Below the pieces are notes generated by a model. The model saw only the letters and a program-made list of their open reading frames with translations, had not been told where the DNA came from and ran no database searches. The translations under genes and the position numbers were made by a program. Below, in pieces: positions 34,888 to 37,800 of a stretch of 64,000 nt of DNA. Source of the DNA: Asterias rubens (lineage: Eukaryota); assembly GCF_902459465.1 (NCBI RefSeq), contig NC_047065.1:1984001-2048000 (forward strand), given 5' to 3'. Numbering within the stretch: position 1 is the stretch's first letter; each line of letters opens with the position of its first letter.

Positions 34888-37800
34888 TTACATCGCATCA
34901 AAATGGAATCGGTGAGACTCCTGTCTCTTTTCTCGATCATCTTCCCTCTGCAAAAAAAAGACAGATTTCCGTAAACCATGCATTATTGTCGTAGTCTTTT
35001 AAAACCTTAATACACACTGCGGGACAAAGATCAATGTGACCAATAAATAAACGAATGAATTATTTTATGTAATTTCAAAGATAAAGTTGGAATTCATATC
35101 ACATTATTTTTAAAAACACAATTATCATTTGTCAAAATCTTTTTACTTTCAAACATATTCCTTGCTCTATGGTATTTCCTGTCACTGTCCTACCTTTTCT
35201 AGAAGTTGGAGTACGCCAACTACGATTGCCATAAATACACAGGTTCCTATAAGAACGCCACCGGTCAATAGAACGGATCTACCAGGGGTAATTAACAGGA
35301 CACTCGTCCACCTGCAAATAATAATTTTAAAAAATATATTGAATTTTACAGAAAGACTCTGCGAAAGACTCTTCAGGAGAAGACGAGCAGAGTATACTGT
35401 TGGAAACGTCGAGACCCAACCAGCTCTTTTCAGAGCCAACACTCACCCTAAGAGATTTACACATGGTTGTACCCGCAAGTTTACTATTTATTTATAATTT
35501 CTTATTATCTTTCCACACCATGCAAAGCTTCAAACAATACTTAGCCAATTCTATATTCTTATTTAAAATTTACATTCACATCGTCTTGCGTAATTTAATG
35601 CCGGCGTCCAGTCGGGCCTTAGTCTATGAAATTGATTCAACATTTAAAAAGTTCACATAAAGATTTACATGAAAATTGCGTAAAATAAAAGAATTGGTGG
35701 TGATTATTCACTCATCAGGGATAACTGTAACAAAGGCACGTCAATAAAACAACATTTTTATTTTACACATTTCCAGTTTTAGTGTTGACGATACTCGGTG
35801 CTATAAGGTCATTAATTGCTATTTCAAAGGGTCGTTTATGGAATGCATACAATTTTAAGAAAAACACACACTCAACCAATAAATGTTTTACTTAGACACT
35901 TAATAAACCTATACAAATTTCACGAATGCCATTTTAGTTCTGAGCAGACGAATGTAGATTCTGATCCCCAAAAAATTGTCTGTGGAATACTTTCCTATTT
36001 TGTTTCACAAGAAAGGAAAAACGCGAACAATAATGCGTCCATGTATTCTCAAAACGCCAATGGAGATTCACGATCACCTAAGAATTTGCATTTTATTTGT
36101 AATCCTATACTTCCATTTTAGTTACCACAAAAGGCAGGTATTTTAAGCAATTACCTAATAACAGCTGTTTTTATTATCTGCACACTTGAGGTGATTTCTA
36201 AAGCATGGCTCTCTGGTTTTGGAATGCCCACTGTTGCGTGTGAAACGACAACCAATGAACGTAGCGAACCAACGAATTCAGCGTGCATATAAATTCAGTT
36301 GAAATTCCCGCCGTATTTCACTACACACCACCGCTGGCTGAACGACTGTTAAATTGTGCCAAGCAAGTTACCGTCAGCTAATTCGCCTCCAACCTGTCTC
36401 TTTGGGTAATTATTCTATAACAACGATGGCTCGTACTAAGCAGACAGCCCGTAAGTCTACCGGAGGAAAGGCACCCCGAAAGCAGCTAGCCACCAAGGCA
36501 GCACGGAAGAGTGCCCCGGCGACTGGAGGAGTCAAGAAACCCCATCGGTACAGACCAGGTACGTCGAACAAACCATAACGGGTCGGGTTAGCTCAGTGGT
36601 TTCTGTCCTTGCCTTTTACCTCCTTGAACCCAAGTGTGATTCTCGGACCGGAGCCTTGCATGTGGATTGGGGTTTTTCAATCCCTACCTAGCGTAGCCGA
36701 TCTATAGAGGGGGTTTCCTCCACGGCCGAAACTGAATTTTCTATTATCTACAAGAAATTTGAGTGTTTCTATGGAGAATGCTTCGCCGACTAGCCTATAT
36801 AATAAAGATTACCAGTTCGGTTTATAGCTAGTTTTTTTTTACGGAGTTTATATTCTCAAGAAAATCAAAGGAACACGACTTTGCCACACATGCAGTTCAA
36901 GAACGGTTGCAAACCAATGATATCATGCTTAATGAAGAATTACTATTACATGTATACGTTTGTAACTGTATCTGTCGGTAATTCAATTCAATTTCACTTT
37001 ATTTACAAACCAATCAACAAAACATAAGATAGTGAATAATGGATCTAAAACCTTCATATTGTTTCATGTCGAGTAAATTGGTCACCGTTTTCATAATGGT
37101 TTGAAAGTGTGAAGTTGTCGTTACTAAACAGTTCCTCATTTTCCCACTCTATTTCCCCGCTCTTTCTCCAGGCACAGTCGCCCTACGTGAAATCCGCCGT
37201 TACCAAAAGAGCACCGAACTACTCATCCGCAAGCTGCCGTTCCAGCGTCTGATCCGCGAGATCGCACAGGACTTTAAGACCGAGCTCCGCTTCCAAAGCT
37301 CGGCGGTGCTTGCCCTCCAGGAGGCCGCCGAGGCGTACCTCGTCGGACTATTCGAGGATACCAACCTATGTGCTATCCACGCAAAGAGAGTCACCATTAT
37401 GCCCAAAGATATCCAACTTGCAAGACGTATCCGTGGAGAGCGGGCCTGAAGAACTGATTGACTTGCTTGGCACAATCGACTTTGATTTAATTTCTTTAAG
37501 TGCTCTTCCTAAAATAAATTAATCCTTCAAATTGTAATGACTCTCCATGAATAAAATTGACAACATTTCAGACGACATTTCAGATAAGATTTTACAGGGT
37601 TGTTGTTAAATACACTTTTTCCTTTTCTTGAATATCTTGCAACAATTAAAACAAATATTTCTTGACATGGGCTCCACTTATTGAGCAACTAATATAATTG
37701 CCCCTACTGCGGGCAGTGTCTAAGAAGTCAAGGTAGTTAGATTCAGGATCTTTAAAATCTATCCTTCAATTGATACAATTATTTATTACCTTTCAAAAAT

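Follow-up and report, generated by a model that had tools for sequence, protein, structure and literature searches.

In a 64,000-nucleotide stretch of the Asterias rubens genome (contig NC_047065.1, positions 1,984,001 to 2,048,000; this whole stretch is called the window below, and its own numbering is used), we looked at an intact two-exon histone H3 gene lying on the plus strand at 36426-37449. The results obtained indicate that this gene, hereafter the variant gene, is the starfish orthologue of an old single-copy H3 paralogue. Its probable task is to provide canonical-like H3 independently of replication, plausibly for oocytes, cleavage embryos and larvae. In its build it belongs to the replication-independent type: an intron interrupts the Gly44 codon, a histone stem-loop is missing, and a poly(A)-selected library contains its spliced RNA. 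Moreover, its product carries Ile71, Leu90 and Ala96, a trio that is unchanged from cnidarians to cephalochordates, and the gene has been nested in the same intron of ITFG1 since the ambulacrarian ancestor.

The preliminary description of this DNA, made from the letters alone, had proposed an intact, spliced H3 with one intron, and this was borne out at the level of both DNA and RNA. The spliced coding sequence (CDS) of 411 nucleotides (nt) gives a product of 136 amino acids without stops. The 3' edge of exon 1 reads CAG/GTACGT, and at the other end of the intron a pyrimidine tract is followed by the acceptor ...TTTCTCCAG/GC (CAG/GC), the Gly44 codon being split after its first base, at CDS base 133. 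The spliced transcripts that had been proposed as a check were then found in assembled RNA contigs. Contig X2 (437 nt), from a poly(A)-selected marine plankton metatranscriptome, covers 36477-36554 and 37168-37526 with 1 mismatch and skips exactly 613 nt in between, while contig X3 (720 nt), from a related species (organism A), is spliced alike and extends from 36280 to approximately 37610. A further contig, from library X1, runs over 37187-37597 with 0 mismatches. Altogether, exon 2 and the 3' untranslated region (UTR) were present in RNA runs of two marine metatranscriptome studies and of organism A. In one organism A contig (X6 record 20), 33 nt of the 5' UTR (36333-36365) that are present in X3 were missing; either the indel is polymorphic or two species have gone under the same label.

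To place the protein, it was compared with the other H3 proteins encoded by the same genome. It differs from the products of three intronless canonical H3 genes only by V71I, M90L and S96A (97.8% identity), and it keeps the canonical tail, Ala31 and Ser87-Ala-Val89. By contrast, 6 residues differ from starfish H3.3, whose genes encode Ser31 and A87-A-I-G90, and none of these diagnostic residues (Ser31, Ala87/Ile89/Gly90) is found in the variant, which has Ala31 and Ser87/Val89/Leu90. The statement that this H3 is not H3.3 and combines A31 and S87-A-V89 with V71I, M90L and S96A thus holds against the H3 and H3.3 of the genome itself, and membership in H3.3 was ruled out on the diagnostic residues. 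The nearest solved structures are those of H3.2/H3.1, ahead of H3.3. That the product belongs to the H3 family is indicated by its length of 136 amino acids and by Pfam PF00125, which matched the exon-2 products P0019 and P0020.

A six-frame search of the genome gave one 100% match to the variant, indicating a single copy. The other H3 genes found were three intronless canonical genes (contigs C5, C7 and C14), each followed by an Rfam Histone3 stem-loop, two H3.3 genes without stem-loop in which Gln93 is followed by an intron but the Gly44 codon is not interrupted (C1 and C7), and a cenH3-like gene on C17. The intron after Gln93 is absent from the variant gene. Synonymous divergence (dS) between the variant and the starfish paralogues ranged from 1.2 to 3.6, at or near saturation for every paralogue, and the variant is therefore not a young duplicate; a recent duplication of canonical H3 in particular was ruled out by dS values of 1.4-1.8. 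Some other copies in this genome were of note in their own right. Truncated canonical-type H3 copies lie at C11:5438491-5439644 and 5483462-5483653, one of them with two in-frame TGA codons, and are probable pseudogenes. At C7:5971436-5974708 (L005:1498-1908, minus strand), an intronless gene encodes an H3.3 protein (S31, AAIG) and has an Rfam histone stem-loop behind it. Finally, all H3 proteins of the genome, canonical, H3.3 and variant alike, carry Glu81 for Asp81, whereas the variant keeps Asp81 in the feather star, the acorn worm, amphioxus and the coral. This indicates the same change in all three paralogue classes in the starfish lineage, either by parallel change or by gene conversion.

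Next, the type of the gene was considered. Histone mRNAs that end in a stem-loop are tied to S phase via SLBP, while a polyadenylated mRNA is free of this coupling and may be kept in store or produced steadily. The variant gene shows none of the features of a canonical replication-dependent gene (stem-loop, lack of introns, several copies). It has an intron, no stem-loop and RNA in a poly(A)-selected library, the tail itself not being seen, as a replacement-type gene would, and this agrees with the class to which it had been assigned from sequence. Searches for the Rfam Histone3 stem-loop (RF00032) found none in the whole window at the gathering score and none in 36000-39000 even at E<=10. The two AATAAA signals that had been described together with the lack of a stem-loop were also located (Table 1). 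The same holds beyond the starfish: no histone stem-loop was detected by Rfam within 10 kb at any of six orthologous loci, nor at the Porites locus described below.

We then looked at the surroundings of the gene. It lies antisense in an intron (35312-38606) of ITFG1, the host gene being on the minus strand, and the splice sites of this intron fall exactly where the preliminary description had placed them. The exons of the host carry FG-GAP repeats, for which only sub-threshold matches were obtained when single exons were submitted to Pfam. The host was identified as ITFG1 because its orthologues in two other species contain the Pfam domain C2_ITFG1 and are matched by the starfish exons, exon by exon. 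A tblastx comparison for PHKB, the neighbouring gene in Antedon, gave no match in the starfish window. In both the acorn worm Ptychodera flava (GCA_041260155.1, L023) and the feather star Antedon mediterranea (GCA_964355755.1, L024), the variant gene has a single intron, at CDS base 133, and is located antisense in ITFG1 between the '..IPNS.LI.IP.P' exon and the transmembrane exon, which is the starfish intron. For one other echinoderm, the shared position in Antedon answers the question of synteny that had been put forward with the first description. Since both a feather star and a starfish have the gene, its distribution implies that the echinoderm ancestor would already have had it. In Branchiostoma (5 assemblies) the gene contains two introns, one at CDS base 133 in phase 1, as in starfish, and one at base 231; it sits among sulfotransferase genes and not in ITFG1. 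The Porites gene is likewise outside ITFG1. The intron at CDS base 133 is absent in Porites and at locus L025.

The variant protein turned out to be widespread among animals. A Porites evermanni contig contains an intronless H3 gene with Ile71, Leu90, Ala96 and Asp81 and without a stem-loop behind it. An exact look-up of the form with Asp81 returned histone H3 of Lingula anatina and Nematostella vectensis and a UniRef100 entry (n=8, Eumetazoa) headed by Branchiostoma floridae, and exactly this protein is found on 879 contigs. Between the variant proteins of coral, feather star, acorn worm and amphioxus there are 0 amino-acid differences, and only 33-55% of third codon positions are identical between phyla. 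The suggestion of a lineage-specific variant therefore does not stand, given the same I71/L90/A96 protein in Cnidaria, Brachiopoda and Cephalochordata and an intron shared with Branchiostoma, Ptychodera and Antedon. In a maximum-likelihood tree of coding sequences, a branch supported at 100/99 set all nine variant genes apart from the canonical and H3.3 genes of the starfish, from which all paralogues in the comparison came.

Between the window and the organism A transcript, 15 coding changes were counted, all synonymous, with 0 non-synonymous ones, and the stop codon changed from TGA to TAA. This corresponds to a dS of 0.16 and a non-synonymous divergence (dN) of 0 against the organism A orthologue. 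In a third species (P0019, ENA assembly), the exon-2 product is 100% identical and is preceded by a different, non-H3 reading, which indicates an intron at the same place. These results show that the variant is under strong purifying selection, and the dN/dS comparison that had been proposed to detect decay revealed none.

How the gene could work may be outlined from its type and from the residues of its product. In animals, residues 87-90 decide between replication-coupled and replication-independent deposition, and UBN1 and DAXX recognise H3.3 by its Gly90 and Ala87. The variant mRNA would be independent of the stem-loop/SLBP pathway and of S phase. It would supply an H3 that behaves as canonical, from a store or continuously, and the oocyte, the cleavage embryo and the larva are the most plausible places for this. 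Because of Ala31, Ser87, Val89 and a bulky Leu90 in place of Gly90, the H3.3-specific chaperones (HIRA-UBN1, DAXX) would be expected to refuse the variant, and the ASF1/NASP route and CAF-1 to handle it. The three conserved residues may also matter at the protein level, through some partner, as their invariance beside coexisting canonical genes suggests.

Several points weigh against this reading of the gene as a replication-independent source of canonical-like H3. The RNA evidence consists of assembled contigs without stage or tissue resolution, and such contigs cannot give true RNA ends, expression level or a mapped poly(A) site. Three runs labelled with the species itself, and guessed to be RNA, contained no variant sequence, which yet fits restricted expression and proves nothing. 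Presence in plankton RNA and absence from the species-labelled runs weakly hint at restricted expression, perhaps in planktonic stages. The tree is unrooted, with paralogues from a single species. As to the chaperones, the argument draws on studies of residues 87-90 in vertebrates and Drosophila, we know of no test of Leu90 itself in animals, and plant H3.3 carries Leu90.

The gene could also persist for the sake of its protein and not of its mRNA type, if Ile71, Leu90 and Ala96 marked out a separate class of H3, either served by a dedicated chaperone or reader or giving nucleosomes of different stability. The three residues are indeed invariant in Cnidaria, Hemichordata, Echinodermata and Cephalochordata while synonymous sites are near saturation, and the same genomes have canonical V71/M90/S96 genes, with no sign of homogenisation by gene conversion; in amphioxus, for example, a V71/M90/S96 H3 was found too, so that both kinds coexist there. 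Ile71 was moreover rare among the retrieved H3 cluster representatives, in a protein database clustered at 90% identity in which full-length variants are hidden within canonical H3 clusters. Against this, all three substitutions are conservative and for the most part buried, the variant is not known to have a partner of its own, and Leu90 with Ala96 is the common state in many protist and plant H3s, so that these residues may simply be ancestral and held in place by the constraint that acts on H3 in general. We regard such a specialisation as the main rival reading but, as the reason for the persistence of the gene, as rather unlikely.

Still less likely, in our opinion, is an H3.3-like action, in which the HIRA pathway would place the variant in active or remodelled chromatin without need of replication. 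The intron, the lack of a stem-loop and the RNA in a poly(A) library are those of a replacement-histone gene, and Leu90 occurs in plant H3.3, but the variant is devoid of Ser31, Ala87, Ile89 and Gly90 and of the intron that H3.3 genes have after Gln93, and the genome already contains two intron-containing H3.3 genes and one of the stem-loop type. It is scarcely credible that canonical H3 left a stray copy here, decaying or without function, which is transcribed within ITFG1 by accident. Its nesting in the intron of another gene and the presence of a SINE-like (short interspersed element-like) repeat in its own intron would fit such an origin; its frame is intact, its splicing exact and its RNA present in a poly(A) library, it shows 0 non-synonymous against 15 synonymous changes relative to organism A, and both the protein, identical across phyla, and the position, kept over the age of Ambulacraria, speak against it. 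A pseudogene was rejected on the intact frame, the exact splicing, the purifying selection and the conserved position.

The favoured reading, a replication-independent supply of canonical-like H3, can be set beside known histone systems. Like H3.3, the variant is encoded by a single-copy gene outside histone clusters, with an intron, without a 3' stem-loop and with RNA in poly(A) libraries; unlike H3.3 (Ser31, A87-A-I89-G90, intron after Gln93), it has Ala31 and S87-A-V89-L90 and an intron at Gly44. With canonical H3 of the H3.2 type it shares 97.8% of its residues, including the tail, residue 31 and residues 87-89, and it differs by Ile71, Leu90 and Ala96, by its single copy, by its intron and by the lack of a stem-loop. 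The cleavage-stage (CS) histones of sea urchins, CS H3 among them, are reportedly maternal products of replacement-type genes, said to have been read from egg poly(A)+ RNA by Mandl and colleagues in 1997, and the starfish gene may be the counterpart of CS H3. Drosophila His4r is a replication-independent, intron-containing and polyadenylated gene for the canonical H4 protein. As in His4r, a replacement-type gene here makes a canonical, or nearly canonical, product and the main difference lies in mRNA regulation; the His4r protein is, however, identical to canonical H4, whereas the starfish variant has three changed residues that are conserved across phyla. A mirror image is offered by the replication-dependent H3.3 reported in Strongylocentrotus purpuratus and Hydractinia (PMC5011920), where a gene with a stem-loop encodes an H3.3 protein, while the present gene, of the poly(A) type, encodes a canonical-like one. 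In both cases protein type is uncoupled from gene type, and the starfish stem-loop H3.3 gene mentioned above (L005) is of the same kind.

Literature searches found no description of an H3 group with I71, L90 and A96, the diagnostic peptide being matched only in a Toxoplasma paper, and a search on a histone H3 nested in ITFG1 gave nothing relevant; apparently, this group has no published name. Searching this genome with PF15511 for an H4 partner of the poly(A) type was unproductive. According to a recent survey, the ancestral bilaterian H3 set consisted of canonical H3, H3.3 and cenH3 (PMC12153100). The variant gene points to a fourth conserved member of the ancestral set, because the same protein recurs unchanged in several phyla, the gene encoding it is a replacement-type one, its intron position is deuterostome-wide and its nesting is as old as the Ambulacraria. 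More boldly, Ile71/Leu90/Ala96 together with a poly(A)-type gene could define an unnamed ancient class beside canonical H3, H3.3 and cenH3, present in many non-vertebrate animals and predating the cnidarian-bilaterian split, with a dedicated role such as packaging in the oocyte or cleavage embryo and its own deposition partner, and overlooked since the usual model organisms lack it. We put this forward tentatively and lean somewhat against it. In any case, the gene offers a natural test of whether H3 residues 71, 90 and 96 carry variant identity, and of how embryos come by canonical-type H3 when the stem-loop pathway is not used. If it is sea urchin CS H3, an old observation in echinoderms becomes a feature of many animal phyla.

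The features of the locus are collected in Table 1. As to the upstream signals, the CCAAT and TATA boxes ascribed to the gene in the preliminary description were both located as motifs. The role of the TATAAA motif as a TATA box is doubtful because the RNA contigs of the relative begin upstream of it, at 36279-36280, and it is probably not the TATA box of those transcripts. In the orthologues of Ptychodera and Branchiostoma lanceolatum, too, CCAAT precedes a TATA-like motif, at some 100-140 nt upstream of the ATG. The B. floridae orthologue has CCAAT with TATTTAA, and at orthologous locus L025 both CCAAT and a TATA-like motif are present, with wider spacing. In Porites a TATA-like motif lies at -97 and CCAAT much further away, at -247, and neither motif was seen upstream of the Antedon orthologue. 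The repeat within the H3 intron is dispersed: a first look through the genome gave 452 candidates, and the 40 that were scored yielded 39 other copies, 78-85% identical. It also reached high depth in the RNA contigs of the relative. ARAGORN found no tRNA in the H3 intron, and a prokaryote-type scan of the 3' flank was uninformative.

Table 1. Positions of the variant H3 gene, its flanking signals and the adjoining ITFG1 exons in the window
Feature	Position	Strand	Basis or remark
CCAAT motif	36252-36256	+	Motif reading of sequence
5' UTR, minimum extent	36279-36425	+	Contig starts at 36280 (X3 record 12) and 36279 (X6 record 20)
TATAAA motif, function doubtful	36288-36293	+	Motif reading of sequence
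Coding exon 1	36426-36558	+	From ATG at 36426 to first base of Gly44 codon
Intron, GT..AG, phase 1, 613 nt	36559-37171	+	613-nt skip in spliced contigs X2 and X3
Dispersed SINE-like repeat in H3 intron	36582-36690	+	About 110 nt; tRNA-like A-box start
Coding exon 2	37172-37449	+	Rest of Gly44 to Ala135, TGA; holds I71, E81, L90 and A96
3' UTR, approximate	37450-37610	+	RNA contigs to 37526 (X2), 37597 (X1) and about 37610 (X3)
AATAAA signals in 3' UTR	37513-37518, 37550-37555	+	Motif reading of sequence
End of upstream ITFG1 exon	38607-38683	-	Donor 38607/38606; 5' limit approximate
Next ITFG1 exon, transmembrane segment	35197-35311	-	Acceptor 35312/35311; 3' limit inferred from GT

Other features were observed elsewhere in the window. 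A long palindromic element at 24578-24783, 12 kb from the H3 gene and with no visible link to it, gave sub-threshold Rfam Histone3 matches at 24723-24764 (plus strand, 20.3 bits) and 24597-24645 (minus strand, 14.8 bits). On the plus strand, an Rfam tRNA match (31.5 bits) barely over the gathering score is located at 29012-29084. Finally, downstream of ITFG1 on the minus strand, an uninterrupted frame of 1018 codons (25578-28631) encodes a series of C2H2 zinc fingers at its C-terminal end (Pfam E=1.5e-21).

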